Shown: piece after piece, positions 24,772 through 38,836 of the stretch | Layout: the number at the start of each line of letters is the position of its first letter | Position numbering within the stretch: the first letter of the stretch is position 1 | NCBI GenBank assembly: GCA_943704425.1 | Contig: CALSCP010001254.1 | Coordinates: 1-39,135 of the forward strand | Source of the DNA: Ministeria vibrans ATCC 50519 | Lineage: Eukaryota > Protista > Filasterea | Reading direction: 5' to 3' | Length of the DNA: 39,135 bases | Program-made: the position numbers and the translations under genes | The notes under the pieces: generated by a model | Told to the model about the DNA's origin: nothing | Seen by the model: the letters and a program-made list of their open reading frames with translations, nothing else | The model's database searches: none

Positions 24772-25133
24772 GGTGCTCCGACAAGGCGATGGCAGAGGCG
24801 TGACCAAAGAAGAAAGGGAAACGGACTGAGCTGACTGATCACTGAGTAAAAACCTAAAAATTGGTCGAGGACTCAAGGAACAATTCTCTCCGTCTCTCTC
24901 TCAATCTCTCGTTCGACAATATTCGTTCGACAATGTATTCTTCAATTCACTAAGATACATTCACCTAAATCCCACGCGGACAGACCGTGGTGTATCAAAG
25001 TACCGTCCGTTGTACTTGAGCGGTGGACGGTCCTTGACGCATATGACTTGTGAGAAAGACGTTTCGACGATCTGTTTGGAATGTTCCAAACAACAAGAAA
25101 GACTAAATAAAATTATATTCACATACTTCACAA

Positions 25134-26831
25134 TCAGGTGCTCGCTGAGGCGTCGTCGGTCGGAGTAGTCTTAGCCACCCCCGACACAACAACGGCACTC
25201 GGCGGCAACACACGCTTGCCCCCCGACGCAGCCGCCTTGTGCCGGCGGTCGTGCTCCTGCCACGGCTGCGGCAGCTGATACGACTCGCCTGCCTTGGCTT
25301 CAAAGAATGTGTACGACAGGGTCAAATGATCCACTTTGGCCAAAAGCGGATCGTTGACAAACTCAGGATCAATGTAAAACAGCACTGGAAGATCAACCTA
25401 ACACATTTAGAGATGCAGAGAGAGAGACATTAGAGAAAACGATACGAACCAGTGATAGAGATCAACAATAAAGAGAAAGACACAAATTAGTGAACAATTA
25501 AGAAAGACACAAAAATAACAGAAAGACACAAATTAGTAAAACACAAGATTATAGCAAAGACACAAATTAGTGAAAGAAAAATGAGAAAGACGCACAAAAA
25601 GACACAAATTAGAAACAAAAGAGAGAAGAAACAAGAATGAGAATCAAAAAGCACAAGCATAATGATATAGTATGTGTGCTCATTGGTTGCAGTCAAATCA
25701 TTTGAACGTCGAAAAAAAAATGTAATCAAAAAAAAAAAAAAAAAAAGAAAGAGAGAGAGAAATGGTCAAATGTTGAATGTGCCGTGTTTAAATCAAATAT
25801 GTGAATCTCCGTTGGTAAGGCACACTCTCCGGACCACTCTTGTTCAATATTCTCTCTTTTCCGCTTCTTATTCCCATTTTTGTTTTCTTTTGTGTTTTTG
25901 ATATTTTTTTCCGTCATGAAAAATCATCAAAACATAAAAAGACTAATTGTGTGCGGTTTTACCTCTTCTCCCGGTTCTAATCGTTGCTACGTCACAATGA
26001 GCACGAAATCGTTACTATTTTATTGGTATTGATTCTTATTGGATTGTTTTTGTGTACCTCTTCAAAACAGAAACATTGAATTTTGGCAAAATAAGGACCA
26101 GCCTACGGGAAAAAAGACAAAAGTCGATTGTAAAAGATATCGGCATAATGGTCACAGGTAACCCTATGGATTTGTAATGGGGTTGCGTTTGATACCTCAA
26201 AGGGAATGACATTGTAGGTAGAAATGCCAATGATTGGCTGGTCGGTCGGATTGGTTGCGGTGTAGAAGACAAGCGCAGTCTCGCCGGGCACAACAGAGAT
26301 CTGAATCACAACCATGAATATAACAAACCCCCCCAAAAAAAAATATATATATTTAATGAATATCGCGTAACTATGTGAACAGACGACAGAAATTTAATAC
26401 ATGTCACACAATGTATTACCTCGCGCTGGAGCGGTTTGAATTTCCACTTCATCTGTGTGCTAATGTCCGCATTGAACGACACTTTCAACGGTCGATATCT
26501 CACAGGCTTCATCTCGCTCAAATCCGAATCCTATGCGCCACAAACATGTCATGTTCGCATCGCACACACACACACTTTTTCTCTCTGCACCGTTCCCTAC
26601 CAAATCGTGCTTTTTCGTGGTGCCGCCGTAGCCGGTTGCCTGGCAAAACATTTTATACAGCGGGACTGCCGCGAAGGATGCGCCGGTGGCGCCGATGACG
26701 ACCGCAGCAGCGTAGTAGGCGGTTGCGCGAATTCGCGCTTTGTGCTCATTTGACGATGATGATCCTGTGTTGGAGAACGCTCGCGCTCGTGCCGGGCCGC
26801 GCAGTACCAACCGAGATGCAGCTCGTAACAT
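25134..26831 (-). CDS. COX11: Cytochrome c oxidase copper chaperone COX11
   Basis: AAVPLYKMFCQATGYGGT, W.FKPLQRE, PGETALVFY, STYNV.PFEAG.YF.KIQCFCFEE|QRL.PGEE|VDLPV.FYIDPEF, LSYTFF; includes 24-nt microexon 25963-25986. Confidence 0.97.
25479..25616. repeat. Minisatellite GACACAAATTAG, about 4-5 copies, in a COX11 intron
   Basis: Copies near 25479, 25525, 25559 and 25601, plus a degenerate copy near 25506. Confidence 0.8.
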
Positions 26832-26965
26832 CACTGCTCCTTCAACAAAGTAAAGAGTCTATCAATAATCAAATAATTCAATTTTTAAAAATCGTTCGGT
26901 TTTCCCTTCGGACTACTTCTCCCTTCTCCATTGATCACTCACATTTACTCAATTCTTCTTCAGAA

Positions 26966-27822
26966 ATGTTTCAGAGCATCGTAGTCCGTCGATTCATACG
27001 ACGACCACTCTACCAATGTCGGGCTCTGTCCACGTTGCCGTTTGACACGCTGAAATTCGTCCGGACGCTTGAATCAAAAGGCTTCACGGGCGCCCAAGCG
27101 GAGGTATCGCCGGCGCTACCCGCGTGCGAAGGACCCCCACTCTGTTTACTACCATTGTCTTTGTGTTTTAGGCTATTAGCGACGCTCTTCGTGATGCTCT
27201 CTCGAGCAGGTAGACGAAAATGAGAGATGTCGTCTGCCAATCGCCTTCCTGATATATCCGTTGAACCCGATCGCCCTGTCGCGAGAATTACCTCTTGACA
27301 AGACTGAACCAGACGAAATTGTGTGTTTTGACGGCTTCGTAGCTTCCACTCGCAGGTGTCACAGAGCGAACTCGCCATTGTCGCTAAAGATCTCGATGCG
27401 ATGCGCACCAAGTTCACTGCCGACTTGAATGCCCACGAAAAGGTCGCCAGAGTGTACTAGAGAGATGCTGCGTTGCTAACACGCCCGTACTTCCAGGCGG
27501 TGAAAGAAGAAGTGGAAAAGTACCGAGCAAATGTGCGGCTGGATTGGAGCCTTGAGAAGCAACGACTGCGCGAAGAGTCAGCACTGCACGATGCGAAGAT
27601 CCACGAGACACGAAGGACTCTCGAGACTGAAATTTCGCATATCAGAGTCAACTCGGAGACGATCAAGCTCGATATCATTAAGGTGGATTTCTCATCCAAA
27701 TGACATTTGCTTGTTTATGACCCTTCCTCTCCCTCTCTCTCTTTCTTTGTGTTCAGCTTGGCGCCGGTACGGTTGTCTCCGCGCTGGGTCTTATTCTAGC
27801 GTACCTCCGCTTCGTTCACTGA
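26966..27822 (+). CDS. CCDC90/MCUR1/FMP32-like (DUF1640) mitochondrial coiled-coil protein
   Basis: Presequence; FDTLKFVRTLESKGFT.AQAE, VRLD.SLEK.R.RE, I.E....ETEI.....E.IKLDIIK, C-terminal TM GTVVSALGLILAYLRF. Confidence 0.9.
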
Positions 27823-28111
27823 GGAATGCTAAACCCTGTCACAATGTACTTTATATTCACAAGCCACACAGATACAAGAATTAGTGTATTCGAACATGTA
27901 AAGATTATCGAGTAAACGAGAGGAAATAAAGTGCATCGGCCGAGGAGTCGATGACCAAGTAAGTACGACCAACGATGTACGCGGCCCTGGCGGGGTCTCG
28001 GCATCAGATACATTACAATTCATACCTTGATACTTTGCTAATACTGTTATAAATTGCATAAACTTAACAAATTCAACAAAATAATTATTTGAACTTATAA
28101 TAATATTTGTT

Positions 28112-29265
28112 ATGCCTTCGCTCATTGTAGACTTGTCCCTCTTGGGAGGCACAGTCTATATACTGCTGCAGCAGCCACATCTAATACCCAAAATTGCTCG
28201 ATTTTCGGGTGTTGCAGTCGGCACGGTGTTTCGCTTCATGTCCAAGTTCCAACGGGCCGCGTCGGACCTCTCCAAGCGTCCCGACATCATCCAAATGCGA
28301 GAGGAACTTTCAAAGACGTACGCTGACCTCACCGATGTCCACGACAGAGTTCGAGAAGGTCAGAGGAACGCAAACGAGCGCTCAACTCGTCCGCTGATCA
28401 TTTCGCTCGCTCAACTCGTCCGCTGATCATTTCGTTCCAGGCGCCGACGCCCTACGGCCCCGAAACATTGCCAAGCGCGTAGCACGGGGAGAAAATGTGG
28501 ATATCGTCAAGATGAGCGAAGAAATCCGTCGAACGACCGATCGAGTGCAGCGTAAGCAATGGTGGAACGGCACAACTTCAACTTCTGTCTGACACTCGCG
28601 TGTAGGAGTTGTTGACACGGCCGCAGGAAGAACATCAGGTTCAACAACTACTGTGTCTGAATCTGTCGTGCGCTCAACGAATGAGACAATGTCAAACGGT
28701 ATGCACAAAAATCGTATCGTATAGTGTGTGTCCTTTTATTGTGTCCCTTTTTCAGATCAACTTGTCGTCGTGGACGAAACAACAAGTCAACAAGTCATTC
28801 AAGTTGCACAAGGGGGTAAGAACTAATGAGATGCAAAGAGTCCAGCGTCACATGCATTGCCATTCGTTGTTCCATAGTGTCTGAGCCAACTCAATCGCGT
28901 TCAACTGCTCAAGGTAACAACTTAAACACACAAAATCCGCCGTTTTTTTCTAAAAAAAAAAAAACTTGTGATTGCCCGCTATTAGAAGAGACGCCAGGCA
29001 GTATCAACTCAAGCACCATTTACGCTGAGGGTACGGAGAAATTTACGACTGACATTTTCGTGACTTCCGTTTCCTTTTGCCTGTAGACATTGAAGGCGCT
29101 GTACGGTTTCGCGCCGACACCCCCTCGTTCTTTGCAGCGCCCACTGAATCCACACGCGCCTCTCACAAGCGCACCAGCTCTACGGTGGACGAGCGACTGA
29201 ACAATATGCGCGGCGGTGCTGCTCACATTGCCGAGGAAATGGAGTTGGATCTCAAGCGGAAATGA
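28112..29265 (+). CDS. TatB-like protein, probably mitochondrial (7 exons, about 256 aa)
   Basis: N-terminal TM helix, hinge proline and amphipathic helix (IVDLSLLGGTVYILLQQPHLIPKIARFSGVAVGTVFRFM), then a coiled segment, a Ser/Thr-rich linker and a C-terminal GGAAHIAEEME helix; six GT-AG introns all keep the frame. Confidence 0.65.
28379..28434 (+). repeat. Perfect 27-bp tandem duplication in intron 1 of the TatB-like gene
   Basis: CGCTCAACTCGTCCGCTGATCATTTCG at 28379-28405 and 28408-28434. Confidence 0.95.
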
Positions 29266-29597
29266 GCTTTTTCTGCCGATTGGTGTTTGTTAGCACGCAC
29301 CATTTTAATGGCCAACTTGACAAGCCCTGTTTTGCTGTTAAGTAACTTTTGTTTGATAACTATGCAACTTTGAAGATGAGTACAATATTAAAATATAAAA
29401 CTTTCACTTACTTGACGTATAATAATTATTCTTATTAAATTAAATTTGTTAAAATAATAATAAAAAATAAAATTTAATATAAAATTATTATTATTATTAT
29501 TTGTTCCTATCAATAATATAATTATTTTATTTTTTCTCATTATTATCATAATAATTATAATAATAATAATAAAAACAAAAAAATAATAATAAATTTA

Positions 29598-29636
<39 letters not shown>

Positions 29637-29740
29637 TTTTTATGAATAATATTCCAAACAATTTTTTCGAGAATTATCAATATCCCCTCAGGTGCCGTCT
29701 GCGTCCTTGACTCGTGCAAACACCCCCTCCTTTGCGTCAT

Positions 29741-33800: not shown

Positions 33801-35023
33801 ATGCCCCAACTCAACATTCAAGACGAAGAAGGCCGCAGAGGTAGCAGTGGGAGTGGTGGTGGTGACGCGACGGCAGTGACCAGTGGGGGCTTGGGAACAC
33901 AGCTCGGCGAGGGGGAGATGGACGAGGAAAAGGTGACGGCGCGCCTGTCGCGCATTCTTGACGAGCTTCAGCACGAAGAGGAGATTCGCGAAGAGACCGA
34001 GATGAAGCGAGTGGCCTCATCCATGTCGCGTCGTGGCAGTTTTTCGTCGTCGTTTCTGCATGTTCCCTCCGCAAGCCACATTAGCGCTGCCGCTGCGCCC
34101 GCGGCGATTGGACTCGCCGAGGAAGCGGCGCGTCTGACAGAACGCGTCAAGACATTGGAGGAGGAGCGTCAGGTGATGGAACAGGCAAAGCAGACTGAAA
34201 TGGACGAGCTCCGACAGCAATTGGAGCGCGAGCGTGAGCTACGTGAGGCGCGCGATCAGGAGGCACGGGCGACGCAAGAACGCCTGGCGTTGCTCGAGGA
34301 GGAGATAAAGTTGTCGCGCAAGGAACGTCGCTTGTTGGCGGGACGCGCTGTTCTCGGGAGTGATGACAAGGATACGCACGACCACCACTGCGACAGCAAA
34401 GGAGATGAGGACTCAATCGATGAGGCATTGGAGCGTGTTGAGCGGATGTTAGAGGCACATAGCAGAAACAACACTGGCAACAAGGAGCAGAGAAGCACCG
34501 TGGGCCAACGGCTCTCAGGCGATGGCGCGCATCACAGCCGCTCACCCTTACGCAAGAGCGTCACACCCATCCAAGCGTCGCGTCGTGCTAGCGGCAGTGG
34601 CTACAGCGGCGGTCGTTCGTCAATCTCACCGACACGTCGGAGTGGAGCACCGACGCCAACGTACGATGAGGAGCGTGTGAGTCTACCTCCTGTGATTGAC
34701 GCCCTCGAGACACGCGCTGCTCTAATGGACCACACGCTGTCGCAACGACGCGAGCGGGTGCTCAAGAGCCTCTTGAACAAAGTCATTGAACAAGCCAACC
34801 CGCGCTCGCGCTCTCCCTCTCTCTCCTCCTCCATCGATCGAGACAGCATGAGCACCCCGCTCACGACGCTCCTCGCCGAAGCGTCCCTCTCCACGCCTAC
34901 CAGCTCGCCCGCGCAGCAGGCCCTCTCCGCCGAAGTGGTCCGACTGGTCGAGCGTGTCCACAAGGCCGCTCCACCCCGCTCCACTTCACGCACTCCCACC
35001 ACTCGAGATCGTTCGCCACACAA

Positions 35024-35074
<51 letters not shown>

Positions 35075-35099
35075 CAAGAAGAAGAAGAAGAAGACGTAA
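29741..35099 (+). CDS. Large ankyrin-repeat protein with an N-terminal CxxC..FCSxxC zinc finger, polyQ, an IQ motif and a coiled coil
   Basis: Introns about 29951-30028, 31326-31400 and 32951-33040; many TPL/TALH ankyrin repeats; CAVC...HFCSEEC; IQ-like AAASLQAVARGARVR; E/R-rich coiled coil. Confidence 0.85.
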
Positions 35100-35169
35100 T
35101 TTGTTATAATAGTATTAATTAATGTGTTTAAGACGTATTGTTATGTGTAAGACAAGAAGCTGATGTAAA

Positions 35170-38836
<3,667 letters not shown>

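Follow-up and report, generated by a model that had tools for sequence, protein, structure and literature searches.

The window analysed here is a stretch of 39,135 nucleotides of the Ministeria vibrans ATCC 50519 genome (contig CALSCP010001254.1, assembly GCA_943704425.1). We focused on positions 28112-29265 of the plus strand. These hold a transcribed, spliced nuclear gene of 7 exons, with 256 codons followed by a TGA stop. RNA-derived contigs of three runs (X1, X3 and X5; two studies) cover the seven exon blocks and skip the six intervals between them. Each of the six introns begins with GT, ends with AG and interrupts the frame in phase 1; their lengths range from 54 to 82 nt. The spliced reading frame proposed in a preliminary description, made from the sequence alone, is thus backed by RNA at all six joints. 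The gene is present in a single copy in its own genome, and the window is matched collinearly by DNA run X7. Coordinates of individual features are listed in Table 1. Within intron 1, positions 28379-28440 hold a perfect tandem duplication of ~27 bp, which takes in a CTGAT resembling a branch point, shortly before the acceptor.

An in-frame stop codon occurs at 28082-28084, and RNA contigs start at 28112 and 28116. Hence, exon 1 has no room for an N-terminal presequence, and the hydrophobic helix is the very start of the protein. This agrees with the earlier statement that there is no cleavable presequence. The transcript starts coincide with the ATG itself, behind an AT-rich stretch (28082-28116). 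This indicates either an extremely short 5' UTR or an assembly break.

Table 1. Features of the TatB-like gene (window coordinates) and giant open reading frames of the mitochondrial contig C1523
Feature	Molecule	Position	Strand	Evidence or remark
Exon 1; 82 full codons + 1 base	Window	28112..28358	+	RNA contigs; carries the whole TatB-like module
N-terminal hydrophobic helix, residues 4-19, with D7 (N in relative)	Window	28121..28168	+	Translation, AF2, hydrophobicity
Hinge Q-Q-P-H; P22 and H23 invariant in both family members	Window	28169..28180	+	Alignments; AF2 helices interrupted at residue 21
Basic amphipathic helix region, residues 22-54; I25-P26, R30, G33, F46-Q47 at TatB positions	Window	28175..28273	+	TatB profiles, helical moment
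Further helix, residues 57-81; aligns to third TatB helix region	Window	28280..28354	+	TatB profiles, AF2
Intron 1; 82 nt, phase 1	Window	28359..28440	+	RNA contigs; position as in relative (L009)
Exon 2; charged helical continuation	Window	28441..28551	+	RNA contigs
Exon 3; S/T-rich linker begins	Window	28606..28698	+	RNA contigs
Exon 4	Window	28756..28815	+	RNA contigs
Exon 5	Window	28878..28913	+	RNA contigs
Exon 6	Window	28986..29030	+	RNA contigs
Exon 7; C-terminal acidic helix and TGA stop	Window	29087..29265	+	Translation, RNA contigs
3' UTR, to limit of RNA contigs	Window	29266..29408 (end about 29408)	+	RNA contigs
Giant Lys-rich ORF	C1523	2523-8666	-	No Pfam match
Giant Lys-rich ORF	C1523	11673-14447	-	No Pfam match
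Giant Lys-rich ORF	C1523	34093-38172	+	No Pfam match
Giant Lys-rich ORF	C1523	40799-43459	+	No Pfam match
Giant Lys-rich ORF	C1523	45798-50384	+	No Pfam match
Giant Lys-rich ORF	C1523	50528-52876	+	No Pfam match

The region directly upstream (about 25100-27860) is occupied by a head-to-head gene pair: COX11 on the minus strand, with exons that match CtaG_Cox11, and a CCDC90/MCUR1-like gene on the plus strand. An RNA contig from the latter stops at 27861, and its last 28 letters are absent from 27700-29500. AT-rich, trinucleotide-like repeats flank the TatB-like gene at 29400-29650. Further downstream, a 2-kb block (35000-37000) has a GC content of 21-28%, while the window is otherwise about 50% GC. 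The gene content of the genome is of holozoan type, including three integrin-beta genes (contigs C749, C376 and C2390) and two T-box genes (C1301 and C1244). Taken with the mitochondrial code and the presence of Bcs1, they suggest a unicellular holozoan.

The protein comprises 256 residues. Exon-by-exon translation places D7 within a hydrophobic stretch at residues 4-19. After a proline hinge comes P22..I25-P26-K-I-A-R30..G33..G37, which is basic and amphipathic with two spaced glycines. A charged helical segment follows (K-R-P-D-I-I-Q-M-R-E-E-L), and the charged helical part runs into exon 2. Exons 3-7 are S/T-rich and the protein terminates with an acidic segment, G-G-A-A-H-I-A-E-E-M-E. Every element of this architecture had been listed earlier, from the D7 helix to the terminal helix, and every one is seen in the translation. 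Residues 1-21 have a mean hydrophobicity of about 0.6 and a low helical moment; for residues 25-57 the moment is 0.5-0.67. Net charge is -1 before the hydrophobic helix and +5 after it. AlphaFold2 (AF2), given exon 1 in a two-row alignment, predicted helices at residues 2-20, 22-32, 36-54 and 57-81 with a mean pLDDT of 74.8. Briefly, hydrophobicity, helical moment, charge and the AF2 model all point to a protein that opens with a short transmembrane helix and continues into a basic amphipathic one. This is a trait of the TatA/TatB family. All searches and folds were run on single exons, leaving out the six codons split by introns.

Besides the ORF of the window itself, a HMMER scan of 1.84 billion representatives yielded a single true relative, P0004, a read-through ORF from a 1.2-kb contig (assembly GCA_025491055.1). 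This ORF is 36% identical to exon 1 and its first intron falls at exactly the same codon position. Residues invariant in both members include G12-G13, P22, H23, I25-P26, A29-R30, G33, G37, R41 and Q47. A profile search of a 5.8-billion set, covering proteins of 45-143 residues, recovered the two known members and none further. Nor did metagenome and genome contigs yield extra relatives when scanned with back-translated patterns. Four other phmmer matches among the 1.84 billion representatives (P0002, P0003, P0005 and P0006) are long repetitive proteins with many short matching stretches; we rejected these as composition artefacts. The known family thus has two members and its profile is thin.

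For comparison with Tat proteins we gathered tat loci from two sets of 61 genomes each, one alphaproteobacterial and one gammaproteobacterial. Our own profiles were built from 25 alphaproteobacterial TatB, 21 gammaproteobacterial TatB and 7 TatA genes; the alphaproteobacterial TatB profile covers the first 80 residues. Exon 1 scored 15.8 bits with the alphaproteobacterial TatB HMM (p 6e-7), 15.3 bits with the gammaproteobacterial HMM and 21.1 bits with a combined HMM (p 1.5e-8), p-values that carry selection because the gene was picked beforehand for the very motif that the profiles score. The relative reached 12.6, 12.9 and 16.5 bits, respectively. For the same three HMMs, the best of 4000 shuffles scored 8.3, 11.2 and 9.9 bits. 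Conversely, the TatA HMM matched neither protein (-0.6 bits for exon 1 and -1.4 bits for the relative; best of 4000 shuffles 9.2 bits).

Profile-profile comparison gave a consistent picture. With hhalign, the alignment of exon 1 and its relative (A1) matched the TatB alignment (A2) with a probability of 87.8% (E 3.3e-6). Columns 9-70 were placed on columns 9-70 free of gaps, so that the two are in register from Met1. Against the 80-residue TatB sets, the probabilities were 92.3% and 94.0%; against TatA, the probability was 0.3%. In a background of 8,996 six-frame ORFs, genuine Tat proteins were the only ones to rank above the window ORF. The reverse profile put TatB ORFs first in this background (best 22.4 bits, E 5e-5). 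A search for neighbours in the ESM Atlas, taken as a lead only, gave TatA_B_E and TatB as the nearest clusters (scores 0.81-0.83).

The scale of these scores is instructive. Genuine TatB proteins across the two bacterial classes score 45-81 bits, whereas bacterial TatA paralogues score 7.6-33.5 bits on TatB HMMs. Hence, the protein is about as distant from TatB as TatA is. In the HMM and profile-profile tests, the resemblance of exon 1 to TatB is nonetheless far above chance. A lack of any profile match had been named beforehand as a finding against TatA/B identity; our TatB HMMs and hhalign do match, and both the alphaproteobacterial and the gammaproteobacterial HMM align exon 1 and its orthologue in register. 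The earlier designation of the product as TatB-like is upheld to this extent. Judged from sequence, homology of the N-terminal module to TatB is quite likely.

Curated models and structures gave no such signal. PF02416 (MttA_Hcf106; threshold 21 bits), against which the preliminary description proposed to check the N-terminus, had no match to the exons even at E 10, and the same was true of the NCBIfam TatB models. Nor did PF02416 match anywhere in the whole assembly. Exons 1, 2 and 7, scanned against Pfam and NCBIfam, produced nothing beyond sub-threshold noise (KIP1, HTH_7 and NmlR). A Foldseek search of the PDB with the AF2 model returned no Tat structure and no match at E 0.001. Its top rows, the SRP54 M-domain and DNA-binding helices, are uninformative as the model is small and all-helical. 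A sequence-profile search of the PDB found designed helical repeats only, and no Tat protein. Scanning the whole genome with TatB alignment A2 returned nothing, the TatB-like gene itself included. Hence, the first filter of that scan is blind to matches of ~15 bits, and blanks in genome scans are weak evidence where very diverged genes are concerned.

At the level of residues, agreement with proteobacterial TatB (PF02416 TatA_B_E) is partial. The shared features are a short transmembrane helix that begins at the N-terminus, Pro 22, (L/I)-P at 25-26, a basic residue at 30, Gly 33 and F-Q at 46-47, together with a basic amphipathic helix, further helices and a long unstructured tail. Of the hinge and L-P motif in alignment A2 (G21, P22, L25 and P26), P22 and P26 are kept in both family members and L25 is replaced by I. 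The hinge Gly, invariant in TatB, gives way to Q in our protein and to F in P0004; the earlier reading of the hinge as QP rather than GP is therefore correct. The TatB Glu-8 column holds Leu, and the acidic residue D7 (N in the relative) sits one place earlier. The protein also differs from proteobacterial TatB in its score (15-21 bits compared with 45-81 bits for genuine TatB, and below the curated Pfam and NCBIfam models), in its nuclear gene with six introns, in its length of 256 residues and in coming from an organism where we found neither TatC nor TatA.

These observations bear on an alternative interpretation, convergence or chance. The gene would then encode a single-pass membrane protein restricted to this lineage and with no kinship to Tat, whose N-terminal anchor, Pro-kinked basic amphipathic helix and coiled helices happen to look like those of TatB. 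We know of no established function for TatB in the absence of TatC, and this raises the prior for convergence. Such an origin would also fit the silence of the PF02416 and NCBIfam TatB models, the missing structural match, the lack of conservation at the hinge Gly and Glu-8, the lack of TatC described below and a family of two members. However, two independent TatB HMMs and hhalign agree on one register from Met1, with p between 1e-6 and 1e-8 for a gene chosen by eye for its TatB motif. TatA has the same architecture and yet obtains the negligible hhalign probability given above. In addition, TatB ORFs come first in the reverse search among about 9,000 ORFs, and the orthologue retains P22, I25-P26, R30, G33 and Q47. 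We consider convergence unlikely.

Other members of the family are poorer matches. TatA/TatE and plastid Tha4/Hcf106 share the N-terminal helix, the hinge and the amphipathic helix, but TatA profiles do not match the protein, by HMM score or by hhalign. Signs of a plastid Tat system are absent from the organism, as is any recognised TatC. Nuclear genes for mitochondrial TatB have been reported only from plants, ochrophytes/oomycetes and cryptists (Carrie et al. 2016; PMC6251230; PMC8662606). Like these, of which plant At5g43680 is the type, the gene described here is nuclear, its product is longer than bacterial TatB and only remotely similar to it, and the presumed location is the mitochondrial inner membrane. 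Unlike them, it belongs to a holozoan lineage, and to an organism where mtDNA tatC was not found; published surveys find mtDNA tatC in every eukaryote that has a nuclear TatB (PMC6251230, PMC8662606). A phmmer search of the 1.84 billion representatives (E 1e-3) retrieved no plant, stramenopile or cryptist protein.

We lean towards an orphan protein derived from TatB, probably anchored in the mitochondrial inner membrane, with a role independent of TatC. The product would be a bitopic membrane protein whose first ~80 residues form a strongly diverged TatB module. It may descend from the TatB of the mitochondrial ancestor, TatC having been lost and TatB kept. If TatC was lost, the canonical TatBC receptor cannot form. 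The most likely topology would place the N-terminus in the intermembrane space and the bulk of the protein in the matrix. By analogy, the hydrophobic helix and the basic amphipathic helix behind it could serve as an internal import signal of the Bcs1 kind. In yeast Bcs1, such a signal gives an N-out, C-matrix topology. The likeness is one of working mode, not kinship: both combine a transmembrane helix with a positively charged amphipathic helix behind it, and neither has a cleavable presequence. Bcs1 itself is an AAA ATPase with no sequence relationship to our protein, and Ministeria encodes it in a separate gene. As a guess, the TatC-independent job may be membrane-bound client binding or chaperoning during assembly of the respiratory chain.

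The same features can be read differently. A true TatB derivative could reside outside mitochondria, in the ER, plasma membrane or another membrane, as an N-out/C-in signal anchor with an S/T-rich cytosolic tail. The ER also uses N-terminal signal anchors with positive charges behind them, as found here. There is no cleavable presequence, and no TatC to keep the protein in mitochondria. Against such a location, the order seen here, with the basic amphipathic helix behind the hydrophobic one, is that of a known internal mitochondrial import signal, as in Bcs1. Moreover, the 16-residue hydrophobic stretch contains Asp, Ser, Gly-Gly and Thr and would be weak as an ER signal anchor. The neighbouring COX11 and CCDC90-like genes fit a mitochondrial role, though in a eukaryote such proximity is weak evidence. 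We regard a non-mitochondrial location as improbable.

The preliminary description saw the protein as the partner of a TatC encoded by mtDNA. The assembly amounts to 29.7 Mb in 2,860 contigs and has one cox1, on contig C1523, which we identify as mtDNA. In this linear contig (55,949 bp, 25% GC), TGA codes for Trp and a tRNA with anticodon UCA is present. Its first 1,021 bp occur again at the other end as an inverted repeat with 99.9% identity, and nowhere else in the assembly. Hence, the linear mtDNA looks complete. Each terminal repeat holds a tRNA-Asp gene, and two gene blocks run away from the middle, on the minus strand to about 29.8 kb and on the plus strand from about 29.9 kb. The contig encodes both rRNAs, 25 tRNAs, nad1, 2, 4, 5 and 6, cob, cox1-3, atp6 and atp9. 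We verified the standard protein genes by Pfam on TGA-free fragments, where pieces of 45-93 residues score 38-96 bits. Hence, a TatC should be visible.

No TatC was apparent. With filters off, the best match of an alphaproteobacterial TatC HMM to all 483 table-4 ORFs of the mtDNA had an E-value of 0.54. In hhalign comparisons of each mtDNA ORF of at least 120 residues with a TatC alignment, the probability peaked at 1.1%. No TatA/TatB-like ORF was found in the mtDNA either; the earlier suggestion to look there for tatC and tatA thus yielded neither. Across the 29.7-Mb assembly, PF00902 detected no TatC. The sole genome-wide candidate for TIGR00945, on contig C528, is a TG-repeat frame and spurious. 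The proposed partnership with a mitochondrion-encoded TatC is therefore not borne out by an apparently complete mtDNA.

Six giant Lys-rich ORFs (783-2048 codons; Table 1) occupy well over a third of the mtDNA. Their TGA-free pieces had no match in Pfam. Candidate explanations include expanded ribosomal proteins and plasmid-derived genes. A further ORF at 43463-44128 of C1523 (plus strand) has 222 codons, 19 of them TGA (Trp), and is polytopic, with no proline and no similarity to TatC.

Bcs1 was the other component to be checked. Its gene is on contig C2371 (107504-110806; locus L165), where a BCS1_N exon scoring 60.7 bits accompanies AAA exons; the N-terminal domain that the preliminary description asked about is thus present. 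In Tat-less eukaryotes, Bcs1 exports the Rieske domain, yet Tat and Bcs1 can coexist (PMC8662606). The twin-arginine motif of the Rieske protein does not track the presence of Tat (PMC6251230).

Could a working mitochondrial TatBC exist all the same? Its TatC would be missing from the assembly, encoded on an unassembled molecule or diverged beyond recognition, with the ORF at 43463-44128 as a candidate. The TatB-type similarity of exon 1 would be explained, one polytopic mtDNA ORF has no assigned family, the genome scan can miss matches of ~15 bits at its first filter, and Tat and Bcs1 are not mutually exclusive (PMC8662606). In other holozoans, a choanoflagellate and homoscleromorph sponges, mtDNA tatC is known, according to literature cited in PMC6251230. 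TatC has conserved prolines, whereas the 222-residue candidate has none. Given an mtDNA bounded by unique inverted repeats with both rRNAs, 25 tRNAs and the standard protein genes in place, short gene fragments that score well enough for a TatC to show, TatC comparisons at background in HMM and hhalign searches and a genome-wide search with no TatC match, we judge a working TatBC to be very improbable. An absence of tatC from both the mitochondrial and the nuclear genome had been named in advance as a result that would speak against the proposal, and this is what our searches returned. With TatC found in neither the mtDNA nor the nuclear assembly, and with Bcs1 present, the mitochondrial twin-arginine translocase suggested by the preliminary description is unsupported. 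A left-over or repurposed subunit is more likely than a working mitochondrial Tat machine.

The reading that we prefer, an orphan TatB derivative, has a broader counterpart. A nuclear TatB may have outlived TatC in a unicellular holozoan and been kept, under selection and with its intron conserved, for a TatC-independent role at the inner membrane, a 'TatB-only' state to which we give an even chance. Published surveys distinguish three mitochondrial Tat arrangements, TatAC, TatBC and TatC-only (PMC6251230, PMC8662606). If the similarity is convergent, the protein is just another lineage-specific small membrane protein. If the 'TatB-only' state is real, it would constitute a fourth arrangement, and the animal-fungal half of the eukaryote tree would have its first reported nuclear TatB. 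A TatB-type protein in an animal relative that lacks TatC and bears Bcs1 would show that a small Tat subunit can be retained alone. It would also offer a handle on the role of TatB apart from holding TatC. Finally, transfer of tatB to the nucleus would be pushed towards the root of the eukaryotes, or an independent transfer would be required.
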